Positions 50,294 to 56,200 of a DNA stretch of 64,000 nt are shown here, piece by piece. The notes below the pieces were generated by a model, which saw only the letters and a list, made by a program, of their open reading frames with translations, was not told where the DNA came from and made no database searches. Within the stretch, counting starts at the first letter, position 1. Every line of letters starts with the position of its first letter. Origin of the DNA: Bugula neritina (taxonomy: Eukaryota; Animalia; Bryozoa); assembly GCA_964035545.1 (NCBI GenBank), contig OZ037771.1, forward strand, positions 12,272,933 to 12,336,932. Reading direction: 5' to 3'. A program made the translations under genes and the position numbers.

Positions 50294-53200
50294 ATGAAAA
50301 TCTGGTTCAGGCATTCTGGACAGCCTCCTGTAAGCTGGTCAGATGTATGGAGACTTAATACCAAGGCATATGCTACTGCTGAGGTAAAACGTGAAATTGG
50401 GAGTTATCATATCACAGATCTCAAACTGGAGAGAACAATTCCAAATAACATTGGAGAGATTGCTGGTGAAGCCCTGTGTCTATGTGTTTCTAACCTGACT
50501 GACAGAGCAAGTCTACACAAGTGAGTGTCTATTATGATAGCTGTGTAAATGTTAAATTTGAGTTTAGTTGTGGTAATTATCACCCAAGATGTATCTAAGT
50601 CAATGCTGAAGTATATTATTACTCATGATGTAATCATGCACTATATAAAGCTATAGTAATATGTATAACATTGTACCTCTACCAGCTGAACGAGTTGTAG
50701 AAATTAGATAGTGCATATGGGAAACTGTCTGTAGTGTTACACATGCCATCATAAATTAAAACATGTTTTATGTAGTTGAATACAGAAGTAGCATATTATT
50801 ACAGTACATGTATACATGTAGGATTATACAGAAGGTTTATATTTGCAACACATAATATATATAAGCATATTATATGTAGCCATATACTTAAAAATAAAAG
50901 ATTTTCAGAATATTAAATACATGCTAATTTGTGTCAGATTAGCTATAACAAAGTAAACCATTTATTATTATGAATCATACTATATATTAGCATTACATTG
51001 TAGATGTAGCCCTTATCTACTAAACTTACAGGATGTCTATATACATATACATCTAATCACTCAACTCTACACAGGGCACCCATTACACCTACAACATGGC
51101 ATAATAGCATTTTTTGCTGCTTACCCTGTCTCAACAAAATTGTTTGCTACATAATTTACATTATAGTTGAATACAGAATATGTCATTATATATATGATAC
51201 AGTAGACTACATATATTACACACTTTATATTACAGTCTGCATCAGCTGACTCAGTTAGAGAAACTAAACATAGGATGGAATCCTCTCAACACAGTACCAG
51301 AAGTTGTGTCATCACTTACATCACTTAAAGAGTTGAATATGTGGAGATGTAAATTATCTACTCTACCTAAGAGGTTTGTTTGTCACAGTTTTTGTATTGT
51401 TTGAAACAATTAATACTTGAAATCATAAAATAGTTTCTTACCAAGTATAATTAGAGCATGTCATTAGGCCTATATAATTGAAAAATATGTGAAATGCAAT
51501 TCTTTTGAATTCTATATGAAATATGGTCTGTAATATTGTGAAAGTAACAAAATTCAAGGTACGCCATTATATATTCTTGTGTTATAAAAATATAATTAAT
51601 AGTAAGCAGTTGTATAGTTGATTAGTATTCACAAACTGAGTATATATAATAATTGAATACTTGTATGCTATTATAATAAATTGTTAACTTCTCATGCGAT
51701 CTGCATGTAATATGCTACAATAAGTTGCTTGGTAGTTAAATTGTGTATACTTTTACCTGGTTGAAAACAAAATGTGAATATAGTAAAAAATATTATAGTA
51801 ATACAGACTACATATATCATACACTTTATATTACAGTCTGTGCCAGCTGACTCAGTTAGAGAAACTAGACATACAAGGGAATCCTCTCAACACAGTACCA
51901 GAAGTTGTGTCATCACTCACATCACTCAAAGAGTTGAATATGTGGTACTGTGAATTATCTACTCTACCTGAGAGGTTTGTGTGTCATAGTTTTTGTATTG
52001 TTGAAACATTTAATACTTGAAATCATAAAATAGTTTCCTACCAAGTATTGTTAGGTTATGTCATTATATAATTGAAAAAATATGCGAAATGCAACTTTTT
52101 TAATTCTATATAAAACATGGTCTGTAATATTGTGAAAATAACATAGTTTTAAGGTATGCCATTATATATTCTTTTGCTATAAAATTTAGTTAATAGTAAG
52201 CAGTTGTATAGTTTGTTAGTATTCACACACTGAGTATATATAATAATTGAATACTTGTATGCTATTATAATAAACTGTTCACTTCTCATGCTCTGCATGT
52301 ACAACGCTACAATAAACTGCTTGGTAGTTGAGTTGTATATAGTTTTACCTGGTTGAAAACAAAATGTGAATACAGTATAAAGTTTTATGGTAATGCAGAC
52401 CACATATATATCATACACTTTATATTACAGTCTATGTCAGCTGACTCAGTTAGAGAAACTATACATGGGAGGGAATCCTCTCAACACAGTACCAGAAGTT
52501 GTGTCATCACTCACATCACTTAAAGAGTTGCATATGTGGAGCTGTAAACTATCTACTTTACCTGAGAGGTTTGTGTGTCACAGTTTTTGTATTGTTTCAA
52601 ACATTTATATATATATATATATATCCAGCTGAAAATTTAATTCTCAGTCACTATGCTAATAAACTAGAAATGACTGCTCACTATATATATTAAGTTTTTT
52701 TAAAATAAGAATATAATAATTACTATAATATAATGGCATACCCTAAAACTATGGGATTTCCATGATATTACAAACCATTACATGCATATAACTTTCAATT
52801 GATAATCTTATATTTTAAATTTATAATGATTTACAATGAGACCACTTAGTAATCCTACTTTGTAAGCATATACACCATTTTATTTATATATATATATATA
52901 TATAAATATATATATATATATATATATATATATATATATATATATATATATATATATATATATATATATATATATATATATATATATATATATATATGTA
53001 TATATATATATATAAATAAAATGGTGTATAGTTTACCACTAAAGAGAGCTCAATGCAGTGCAGAGTAAAGTAAATAAACATATAAACATAATAAACATAT
53101 AAACACACATATATATATATATATATATATATATATATATATATATGTATATATATATATATATATATATATATGTATATATATATATATATATATATAT

Positions 53201-56200
53201 ATATATATATATATATATATATATATATATATTTGGTACTAATGCAATTTTGGATATAAAAATAAACTTAGATCTTCATTTTATCGATAAAATGAAGATC
53301 TAAGTTTATTTTTATATCCAAAATTGTATTAGTACCAAATAAAAATACTCTATTTTTTGAAATATTGAGTTCTTTTGATTCATTTTTGATTATAGAAACT
53401 ATATATATATATATATATATATATATATATATATATATATATATATATATATATATATATATATATATATATATATATATATATATATATACATATATAT
53501 ATAAACATATATATGTTTGTATATATATATATATATATATATATATATATATGTATATAAATATATATATATATATATATATATATATATATATATGTAC
53601 ATATATATACACTATATTACAGTCTATGTCAGCTAACGCAGTTAGAGAAACTAGACATAGCATTGAATTCTCTCTGTTTTGAAGTTACACATATATATGC
53701 AATGGTTTGTCATATTGTGAGAATATCAAAATTTTAATGTTATATGCCATTATATATTGCTGTGCTATGAAAATGTAATTATTAGTAAGCAATAATTTCT
53801 AGTTTACTAGTATTAACTGAGTTTAAAAATGAATACCTGTGTACTATTATAATAATTTGTTATATTTTTACCTAGCAGTCAAGCGTTATGATAGTATGTT
53901 ACTTTATATAGATCTGTTATGAAGGAATAAATTGATAGTATAGTTTTTTATCCCTCATCATCATGTGGTAGCTATAGTAACTGTAGTAATTGTACTCTGT
54001 ATAAGTGAAACTAAATATATCAAACACTGTATGTTTATAGTCTATGTCAGCTGACTCAGTTAGAGAAACTAAACATAGGAGGTAATCCTCTCAACACAGT
54101 ACCAGAAGTTGTGACATCACTCACATCACTTAAAGAGTTGAAAATGGGGAACTGTGAATTATCTACTCTACCTGAGAGGTTTGTGTGTCACAATAGACTT
54201 ACCATTTAAAACAATTTCAGCAGAATAGTCAACACAGTTAAACTACATTACGGTGTTCATACCTCTCCTCTGTAAAGCTAGAAATGGTGTATACATAACA
54301 AGTTGTTCATATCTATAATACGTTCAATAATTCACTTTCCTTTATAAATTACAAAACTATCTTTTAAAGAATGCACACGTAATATCCCTGCAACATAGTA
54401 AAATGGTACCCTAAACTTGTTGTTCATCATATTGTAGCAAAGTTGATCAAAACTTGAACTTTCTGTTCAAAAAGTGTATTTCTTACCATTTTTAGTAGAA
54501 TATAGAGAATAGTATTATGTTCTTTCCTGGCATACTTTCTGTAATACTTCATGCAGACTCATACATAATAACTTTGTCTCTATATAGTTTGATTATAACT
54601 GTATAATATATAGTACACATATATAGTATATATTATACATATCTAATATAATATCAGTGTAAGCAGTTATACTCAACTACATGTTATATTATAGAACAAT
54701 ATTGTTTATGGAAGCATTTACAATTGTGACAGTAATATACCTCTTTAATATCTTTTATACCAATTCATTGTAGTTGTAGTGTTGTAAATGGTTCGGATAT
54801 CAAAAACAACACTTGATAGTTGTGGGAGTATCAATAAATGAAAATTCTAGAATTACAATTATATCCCATACTACTTTAAAGGGTTTTATAAAATAAGGTC
54901 ACTGTAGTCATTGTCACTTCATACGTCTACGTTCTGTGTATAATTGCTTTACTATCATTGTATATTTATGACAGCTATAATTAGATCTCACTAACCTCTA
55001 GTATGTGCTGATAATATGAATATAATATGTTATTAGGATACAGAATCTACAAAATTTACAGGAACTACGCATATCTTACAATAAATTCACCAGTCTCCCA
55101 TCTTCAGTGTGTGCATTGAGTAATCTGCACACACTGAATATATCCTACAACAGATCTATGACATCCTTGAACCCGGAGATACTACAGCTAACACGTCTTC
55201 GTACACTGGATATATCTGGTTGCAATGCTCTTACATCTCCTCCACTAGAAGTCTGTAGGAAAGGATTAGATACTGTGCGACAATACTACACAGACTTGGC
55301 TAAGGGTGCTGGTAGAAATCTGCCATTTGCTACAATAGTAGTGTTGGGGAAAGCAATGGCAGGTAAGACCAGTCTAATCAGAACATTACAGAGCACTGAC
55401 AGGAAGAGAGTTCTGACTGACAGAAGTTCAAATGCAGAGTATGATGAGACCACAAAGGTGTTTAATGTGGAAGAGGTGGAGGTGGATGGTACAACACTTC
55501 GTCTCATAGATATGGGAGGCCAAGAAGTTTACCATATCACATACCATTTAACACTGAGACAGAATTGTGTACCGGTAATTGTAGTCAATATGGAGCAGTA
55601 TGATCAGATTTCAAATGAGTTTACAAAGGAAGAGGCTGTCAGAAAGTTGGCCTTCGACTTCATGTCTCACCTCTATCTCGCCCATCCATCTCTTGGCCCA
55701 CCTAAGCTTGTCCTCACACACAAGGATAAGTTTCAGAGTCAACAGTTCCAACAGCTTAAAGAAAACTTTCTTAGAATATCTGAACAGCTGTGCAAAAACG
55801 TTCTTGATGAAGAGAAAAGTTCAGATGGAGATTTTGCGAAAATTCAGCATTTCAATTCATCAGATGGAAAGGTTTTTGCCAGTGAAGATGTTTATGAGAT
55901 TGGAAAGGATGACAAGTATACTGAGTTTGAAATGATAAAGAGCTCGCTTCTTCAAAGTAGTCAGCATTTTGTTAAGCTTTTGCCACTGATCTGGGAAGAA
56001 GTGAATGAGAAGGTTTTGTCTTTAACCGGAGCATTCGGCTCTTTTTCATTTATTCTGTCAGAATTGAGAAAAGAAGGCTTTGAGGTGGAGCCACATCAGC
56101 TAGATACAATTCTCACATACATGCACGACTGCGGTAAAGTTCTCTGGTATAAAAATATTGATACACTCAAACCATACATATTTCACAAGATCACAGAAGT

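Follow-up and report, generated by a model that had tools for sequence, protein, structure and literature searches.

The window analysed here, a 64-kb stretch of the genome of the bryozoan Bugula neritina, carries on its forward strand a candidate receptor gene in which a homogeneous array of cassette exons coding for leucine-rich repeats (LRRs) precedes a Roc-COR region and a caspase domain. The N-terminal coding exon (50288..50520; all positions are those of the window unless a locus handle precedes them) holds an open frame whose in-frame ATG is at 50294; its end is in phase 2 and is followed by a GTGAGT donor. Its start is marked by RNA-only depth and by loose contig ends at 50288-50294. 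Behind it, on the same strand, lie four intact cassettes: exon 1 (51236..51373; two LRRs with the variable patches NIGW and NMWRCK), exon 2 (51837..51974; DIQG and NMWYCE), exon 3 (52431..52568; YMGG and HMWSCK) and exon 5, the fourth intact one (54041..54178; NIGG and KMGNCE). Each is 138 nt long, lies between an AG and a GT, and has a single open frame, which begins at exon nucleotide 2. Every intact cassette is in phase 2 at both ends and comprises 45 whole codons and a split codon at either end, equivalent to two 23-residue LRRs. The N-terminal exon stops at 50520 with two nucleotides of a codon and the Roc exon opens at 55037 on a third codon position. These phases match those of the cassettes, and any number of cassettes would therefore be read in frame. 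A repeat finder returned 202-nt copies at spacings of 601, 594 and 1610 nt and intron repeat families at 592-600 nt. Each exon was thus duplicated along with its intron, in units of ~600 bp. The preliminary description of this DNA, which was made from the letters alone, had counted four intact and one broken 138-nt exon of phase 2-2 with first spacings of 601 and 594, and had quoted the residues that follow LEKL and LKEL. The repeat finder and the frame check confirmed the former, and the translation of the four exons agreed exactly with the latter.

The broken copy is a truncated cassette, presumably a pseudo-exon (53623..53679, + strand), which retains the first 57 nt of the unit (to ...LEKLDIAL) and an AG acceptor and is devoid of a donor. 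The GT dinucleotides close by would yield exons of 53 or 61 nt, both frame-breaking. Compared to the paralogous unit at L035:4615-3983, the exon is ~81 nt and the intron 132 nt shorter, consistent with a deletion of ~213 nt. The intron after cassette exon 3 holds ~730 nt of (TA)n microsatellite blocks (52881..53609) with a near-perfect palindrome (~53240-53340) that gives an inverted match to itself. This insert has no counterpart in the paralog introns, is hairpin-forming and may be a small foldback element.

Downstream of the array, a large exon (55037..57095, + strand; approximate 3' end) encodes three further LRRs, a predicted Roc GTPase and a COR-like region. Pfam Roc scored 32.1 bits on this exon (cut-off 27), and the P-loop GKAMAGKTS falls at residues ~107-115 of the frame 55026-57095. 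The COR-A score was 17.3 bits, under its cut-off of 35.3. Relatives that align over the whole Roc-COR exon do match COR-A, the protein P0098 weakly and the Lingula protein P0183 above the cut-off. Matches to Pfam LRR_4, LRR_8 and LRR_1 on the cassette and on the start of the Roc exon place the LRRs N-terminal to Roc, and the large exon has PDB matches to the LRR-Roc segments of LRRK2 and of the Chlorobium Roco protein. Two caspase-domain exons follow (59077..59787, + strand, with approximate splice boundaries; open frames 59077-59274 and 59536-59787), on which Peptidase_C14 scored 36.5 and 26.7 bits (cut-off 21.4). The catalytic histidine (SHG) and cysteine (EACSEG) are kept and align with the SHG and QACSG of Watersipora proteins; the window gene carries a predicted caspase fold with both residues. 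In one paralog on contig C6 (L034:1302-1556) the caspase exon has EASNGG in place of the cysteine motif, together with a stop codon, and some members of the family are therefore pseudo-caspases or pseudogenes.

The gene belongs to a large family. When cassette 1 was used to search the full 216-Mb assembly, at least 354 first-look candidates came up. Scores were obtained for 40 of these, each with 91-100% identity to the query, and contig C6 (2.5-6.1 Mb) harbours nearly all of them. The N-terminal exon has 58 homologous exons genome-wide. Of its close copies (70-85% identity), 34 are on C6 (2.5-6.25 Mb) and one on C113, besides that of the window on C7; remoter groups lie on C1, C8 and elsewhere on C7. 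The first caspase exon has 82 matches in the genome. The window gene is the sole close family member at its place on C7. There are about 35 close paralogs, with a common order of N-terminal exon, 3 to at least 16 cassettes, Roc-COR and caspase. The anatomy of the paralogs was taken from 200 kb of C6 sequence, in which the cassettes are spaced at 560-650 nt. The genes there have 3, 4, 4, 5, 5, 14, at least 14 and at least 16 cassettes, so that the variable copy number anticipated in the preliminary description is found here among the paralogs of a single genome. With AG and GT in place and an open frame, 128 of the 132 sampled cassettes are intact, and it is on these 128, roughly one third of the cassettes of the family, that the statistics given below are based. 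Two length variants were seen, a 129-nt exon at L040:7556-7684 (in-frame loss of three codons, AG and GT intact) and a frame-shifted 140-nt copy at L050:6110-6249. The metagenome contig L051, whose Roc-COR exon is 65% identical, was considered and set aside as not being the same type of array, as it has no homogeneous cassettes.

The introns bear on the origin of the window array. Introns 1 and 2 of the window are 90.3% identical to one another, and each is 90-92% identical to introns of C6 paralogs. Duplication in place of the three window units is ruled out by this equal closeness; the tandem units therefore predate the window copy of the gene and the array was inherited from the family. In the single-copy introns that flank the array, one ahead of cassette 1 and one behind the last cassette, identity to four or five paralogs is 88-92%. 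More specifically, the intron upstream of cassette exon 1 is 91-92% identical to the introns of its positional counterparts and the one downstream of cassette exon 5 is 87.5-88% identical to that in the paralogs L036, L034 and L039, while the Roc-COR exons of the paralogs are 73-92% identical to that of the window.

Contigs from RNA and DNA runs were aligned over positions 50000-52870. In three runs (X1-X3) the depth is confined to the exons and is zero in the introns, whereas a fourth (X9) covers the introns and is DNA. A GT..AG joint from 51974 to 52431 is present in all three RNA-type runs. The exon-only depth and this joint indicate that cassettes of the family are transcribed and spliced as predicted. 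The protein searches returned no multi-cassette protein derived from a transcript.

The distribution of the variation among the 128 cassettes is highly uneven. Amino-acid entropy reaches 2.0-3.1 bits at codons 11, 13, 14, 34, 36, 37 and 39, and is at most 1.2 bits at the other 38. In the numbering of LxxLxLxxN/C, six of the seven hypervariable codons correspond to positions 5, 7 and 8 in each repeat and the seventh to position 10, in the second repeat. On the basis of the LRR rule and of the brown-algal models, we infer that the seven positions sit on the strand and loop of the concave LRR face. Positions 2 and 3 (E-K and K-E) are conserved, with a ratio of nonsynonymous to synonymous substitution rates (dN/dS) of 0.35, and the other non-scaffold sites, including the convex half, are almost invariant. 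The earlier proposal that variation is focused on the binding face is thus upheld for positions 5, 7 and 8 (and 10) and fails for positions 2 and 3 of the same strand. Nucleotide diversity is 0.45 at the first and second positions of the seven codons, as opposed to 0.087 at third positions of the framework. The same bias is apparent in the window alone, in which 12 of the 23 variable exon nucleotides fall within the 21 nt of the seven codons (hypergeometric P = 3e-6), and exons 1 and 2 differ at 8 of 21 hypervariable nucleotides and the paired introns at 44 of 452 (P = 8e-4). The 128 cassettes hold 83 distinct amino-acid patches in the first repeat and 92 in the second, in 118 combinations, most of the patches being singletons.

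In 60 phylogenetically independent nearest pairs, the seven codons showed 246 nonsynonymous and 22 synonymous differences, giving a dN/dS of 2.25 (bootstrap 95% confidence interval, CI, 1.66-3.23; binomial P = 3e-4), compared to 0.53 for the framework in the same pairs. In order to avoid circularity, the site set chosen beforehand from the window (codons 11-14 and 34-37) was tested on C6 alone. The 124 C6 cassettes gave 1.89 at these sites (CI 1.31-2.93) and 0.63 at the rest; an excess of nonsynonymous change at the variable x positions, as had been expected from the window, is therefore seen in a set independent of it. Restricting the C6 data to positions 5, 7 and 8 gave 2.11 (CI 1.47-3.17). 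Intron identity proved misleading as a clock for exon divergence, in that an exon and its downstream intron often differ in history, and it was replaced by collinear blocks and by the single-copy flanking introns. The clearest evidence is from collinear young duplicates. In one pair (L044:7478-10000 against L040/41; 2523 nt, no indels) the introns differ by 0.87%, the framework by 1.9% and the hypervariable codons by 19% (Fisher P = 3e-17). The corresponding values in a second block are 0.6%, 4.3% and 33%. In the young duplicates, change at the hypervariable codons thus exceeds that in the flanking introns by a factor of 22 to 50. Between the window gene and its positional counterparts, the introns have diverged by 8-12% and the seven codons by 19-48%. 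These comparisons support the view that diversifying selection maintains the variety at the seven positions.

The manner in which the arrays change can be read from individual unit pairs. Where the downstream introns are identical, the exons often differ by 8-10 nt, all of them in the first repeat. Alignment of 500 nt on each side locates the switch inside the exon, the upstream sequence being diverged or unalignable and the downstream sequence showing 100% identity over a length that exceeds 500 nt. In other pairs the switch falls at the 3' end of the exon. The exchange of exons suggested in the preliminary description is borne out by these breakpoints inside exons, with identity on one side only. 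The introns fall into several classes. About half of the pairs have no detectable similarity, and the full-length matches are mostly 75-90% identical. The synonymous distance in the framework plateaus near 0.11 irrespective of the intron distance, and the framework synonymous sites are far more uniform than the intervening introns, many of which cannot be aligned. This uniformity implies either that homogenisation is restricted to the exons or that the nucleotide sequence as such is under selection. Among exons of the young duplicates, some have 6-12 changes, with up to three in one codon, and others have just one or two isolated nonsynonymous substitutions; point mutation as well as conversion seems to play a part. 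The breakpoints and the intron classes point to unequal crossing-over and gene conversion that would use the invariant exon framework as homology and halt at dissimilar introns. Entire variable patches would be copied or rearranged in such events. Considering the breakpoints, the variable cassette counts and the selected sites, the diversification is a germline process of duplication, exchange and selection.

We propose that the window holds the sensor arm of a gene that belongs to a large, germline-encoded, lineage-specific family of LRR-Roc-COR-caspase genes, and we assign this explanation, taken as a whole, a probability of about 0.77. The arrays would grow, shrink and swap parts by unequal homologous recombination and gene conversion. 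The near-invariant exon framework would serve as the homology tract, kept uniform even at synonymous sites while the introns diverge, and diversifying selection would keep the seven positions of each cassette extremely varied. The variable positions would contact ligands, and binding might be relayed through the Roc-COR switch to the caspase, with an immune, cell-death or self/non-self response as the outcome. Several observations weigh against this proposal. Counting-based dN/dS is a rough measure on recombining 45-codon repeats. The multi-nucleotide patch changes in the young duplicates may be templated conversion and not new mutations, and part of the rate excess therefore need not represent positive selection on point changes. 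Only about one third of the cassettes were sampled. The window copy itself carries a broken cassette, and no RNA contig unique to it was seen among the RNA-type runs over positions 50000-52870. The loose ends at 50288-50294 reveal a short 5' exon (an ATG and about five codons) that matches the C6 paralogs, and no match to this exon of the paralogs was found in the window, within the 50 kb upstream.

The window copy might be a decaying, dispersed partial duplicate of the C6 family with no function of its own, a reading that we hold possible, if doubtful. In addition to the missing 5' exon, the truncated cassette and the lack of a unique RNA contig in the aligned region, it draws on the loss of homology with the paralogs at ~50191, ~97 nt before the first coding exon, where a high-copy transcribed repeat begins, on the ~1-kb insertion of microsatellite and palindrome and on a very young BEL/Pao element just upstream. 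Yet open frames persist in all four intact cassettes, in the 690-codon Roc-COR stretch and in both caspase exons, the splice sites and the catalytic histidine and cysteine are kept, and there is an in-frame ATG at 50294, the missing exon amounting to only about five codons in the paralogs. The window copy may use this ATG and a foreign promoter, or it may be silent. The repeat at 50000-50190 has a depth of 45,000-71,000 in the DNA run, compared to ~1,000-1,700 in adjacent single-copy bins, and is present in the RNA-type runs as well; it might mark the point where the dispersed duplication was joined, or act as a foreign promoter. The BEL/Pao retrotransposon occupies 40236-48410, upstream of the receptor gene, with stretches of its long terminal repeats at 40236-40535 and 48111-48410 and an uninterrupted open frame at 41692-48060 that encodes a 2123-codon gag-pol. 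The terminal repeat stretches are 100% identical over at least 300 nt, and the insertion is therefore very young.

A different account holds that the excess change is a by-product of exon-limited conversion and unequal crossing-over that shuffle old patches, with no selection for novelty. The breakpoints inside exons lend themselves to this account, as do the homogenised synonymous sites of the framework and the three changes in one codon, with framework changes nearby, in the young duplicates. Furthermore, some of the alternative patches recur in other cassettes, according to a donor search over the sampled third. Conversion alone, however, homogenises, and it could not create or keep 83 and 92 patches, mostly singletons, in 128 cassettes. 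The ratio of nonsynonymous to synonymous change is above expectation, and some young pairs have single nonsynonymous changes at variable codons. With a patch variety of this order and a dN/dS above 1, selection for diversity is needed, and the shuffling of old patches by itself is an unlikely explanation.

Combinatorial use of the cassettes in the individual, by regulated skipping or somatic recombination, would be compatible with the symmetric phase, which keeps every combination in frame. Alternative splicing of LRR exons has been reported for brown-algal LRR-ROCO genes (PMC11378527). RNA-type joints from 50520 to 51837, from 50520 to 52431 and from ~51373 to 52431 would skip cassettes. They are ambiguous and were rejected as evidence for the window gene, as their shorter side spans 20-28 nt of sequence that is shared among paralogs. 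Indeed, all joints of this kind have fewer than 30 nt on the shorter side, several carry extra letters of other copies, and the back-joints are cross-mapping from longer arrays. Every cassette is, moreover, an ordinary exon of a complete gene, and combinatorial use is in our judgement very unlikely. It is highly improbable that, in addition to the germline process, cassettes are chosen or recombined within an individual, by skipping or somatic exchange among ~350 cassettes. Were this so, the cells or zooids of a colonial animal would bear different LRR-Roc-COR-caspase receptors, an anticipatory recognition wired to cell death. Finally, the notion that the variable positions are merely unconstrained and drift neutrally beside a purified framework is scarcely credible: x positions do vary more between repeats than the L/N scaffold in any LRR protein, and in old pairs the nonsynonymous p of ~0.42 at variable codons resembles the saturated intron divergence, but a dN/dS of ~2 with a CI above 1, the near-invariance of positions 2 and 3 and of the entire convex half, which are likewise outside the scaffold, and the 22- to 50-fold excess over introns in young collinear duplicates, which is impossible for drift, speak against it.

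The proposed family can be set beside known receptors. Among animal proteins, it can be compared with ROCO proteins of the MFHAS1 type, of which human MFHAS1 lacks a caspase domain, and with proteins of the bryozoan Watersipora subatra. The latter are the closest of the annotated proteins, the Roc-COR exon being 32-39% identical to them. Two of these (XP_067947674.1 and XP_067948342.1, annotated as MFHAS1 homolog or uncharacterised) share the order of LRR, Roc, COR-like region and Peptidase_C14, but their LRRs are irregular and diverged, in contrast to the homogeneous cassette array of the window gene. In the variable lymphocyte receptors (VLRs) of lamprey and hagfish, the germline gene is incomplete, and somatic assembly draws on flanking, non-exonic cassettes. 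These receptors are similar to the present family in being LRR receptors that vary at concave residues and in having interchangeable cassettes. Neither an incomplete germline gene nor non-exonic donors of the VLR type were seen here: each cassette is a normal AG/GT exon, the genes are complete from the N-terminal exon to the caspase, and diversity is seen only between germline copies. The likeness to lamprey VLRs drawn in the preliminary description is hence one of outcome and does not extend to mechanism. The LRRs of plant NLR and RLP proteins and the TLR and NLR expansions of invertebrates are comparable in their clustered birth-and-death families, unequal crossing-over and selection on the solvent-exposed xxLxLxx. 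The present family differs from them in its Roc-COR switch in place of NB-ARC or NACHT, its fused protease and its modular LRR exons with a near-invariant nucleotide framework.

The closest parallel is with the LRR-ROCO genes of the brown algae Ectocarpus and Saccharina, which have in common with the present family the LRR-Roc-COR architecture, the large size and fast turnover of the family, and short tandem exons of phase 2. In the algae, each 72-bp exon of phase 2 encodes one LRR of 24 residues, and the number of exons differs between recent paralogs (PMC3341825, PMC11378527). The LRR region is a recombination hot spot there, and positive selection was found at exon positions 15, 17, 19 and 20, corresponding to LRR positions 3, 5, 7 and 8 (PMC3341825), compared to 5, 7 and 8 (and 10) here. 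Further differences are the two 23-residue LRRs in each 138-nt exon, a different offset of the exon in the repeat, the animal host and the caspase after COR. Inverted intronic exons are frequent in Ectocarpus, whereas the arrays described here run strictly head to tail. Inverted or non-coding LRR exons in introns, as traces of shuffling, are not typical of this family: the 132 copies include a single reversed fragment, of 40 nt (L031:4130), and a single truncated cassette, that of the window. The likeness to the brown-algal arrays is most likely convergent.

No description of such a cassette-array family in animals was found in the literature searched. The genes place a putative sensor (LRR), switch (Roc-COR) and executioner (caspase) in one polypeptide, and they may be regarded as an animal counterpart of the candidate receptors of brown algae, down to the intron phase and the selected positions, which argues for convergent solutions. 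Clustered receptor families under diversifying selection are a hallmark of immune and self/non-self recognition. The family would accordingly be a concrete candidate in a colonial, symbiont-bearing group of animals for which essentially no genes of immunity or allorecognition are known. The evolution of its LRR exons is also unusually readable, given the invariant framework, the seven hypervariable codons and the visible breakpoints.

Other features of the window are of note. A long inverted duplication joins 18832-22000 (- strand) and 37000-40113 (+ strand), with identical or near-identical frames on opposite strands, such as 18832-18987 and 39958-40113 or 20930-21088 and 37689-37847; it flanks a region with reverse-transcriptase-like frames at 25.5-28 kb. 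Related open frames of ~156-184 codons occur at both ends of the window (654-1121 and 63447-63998, both on the + strand) and belong to a repeated element or a gene family. A long coiled-coil-like frame lies on the opposite strand at 63446-63919.

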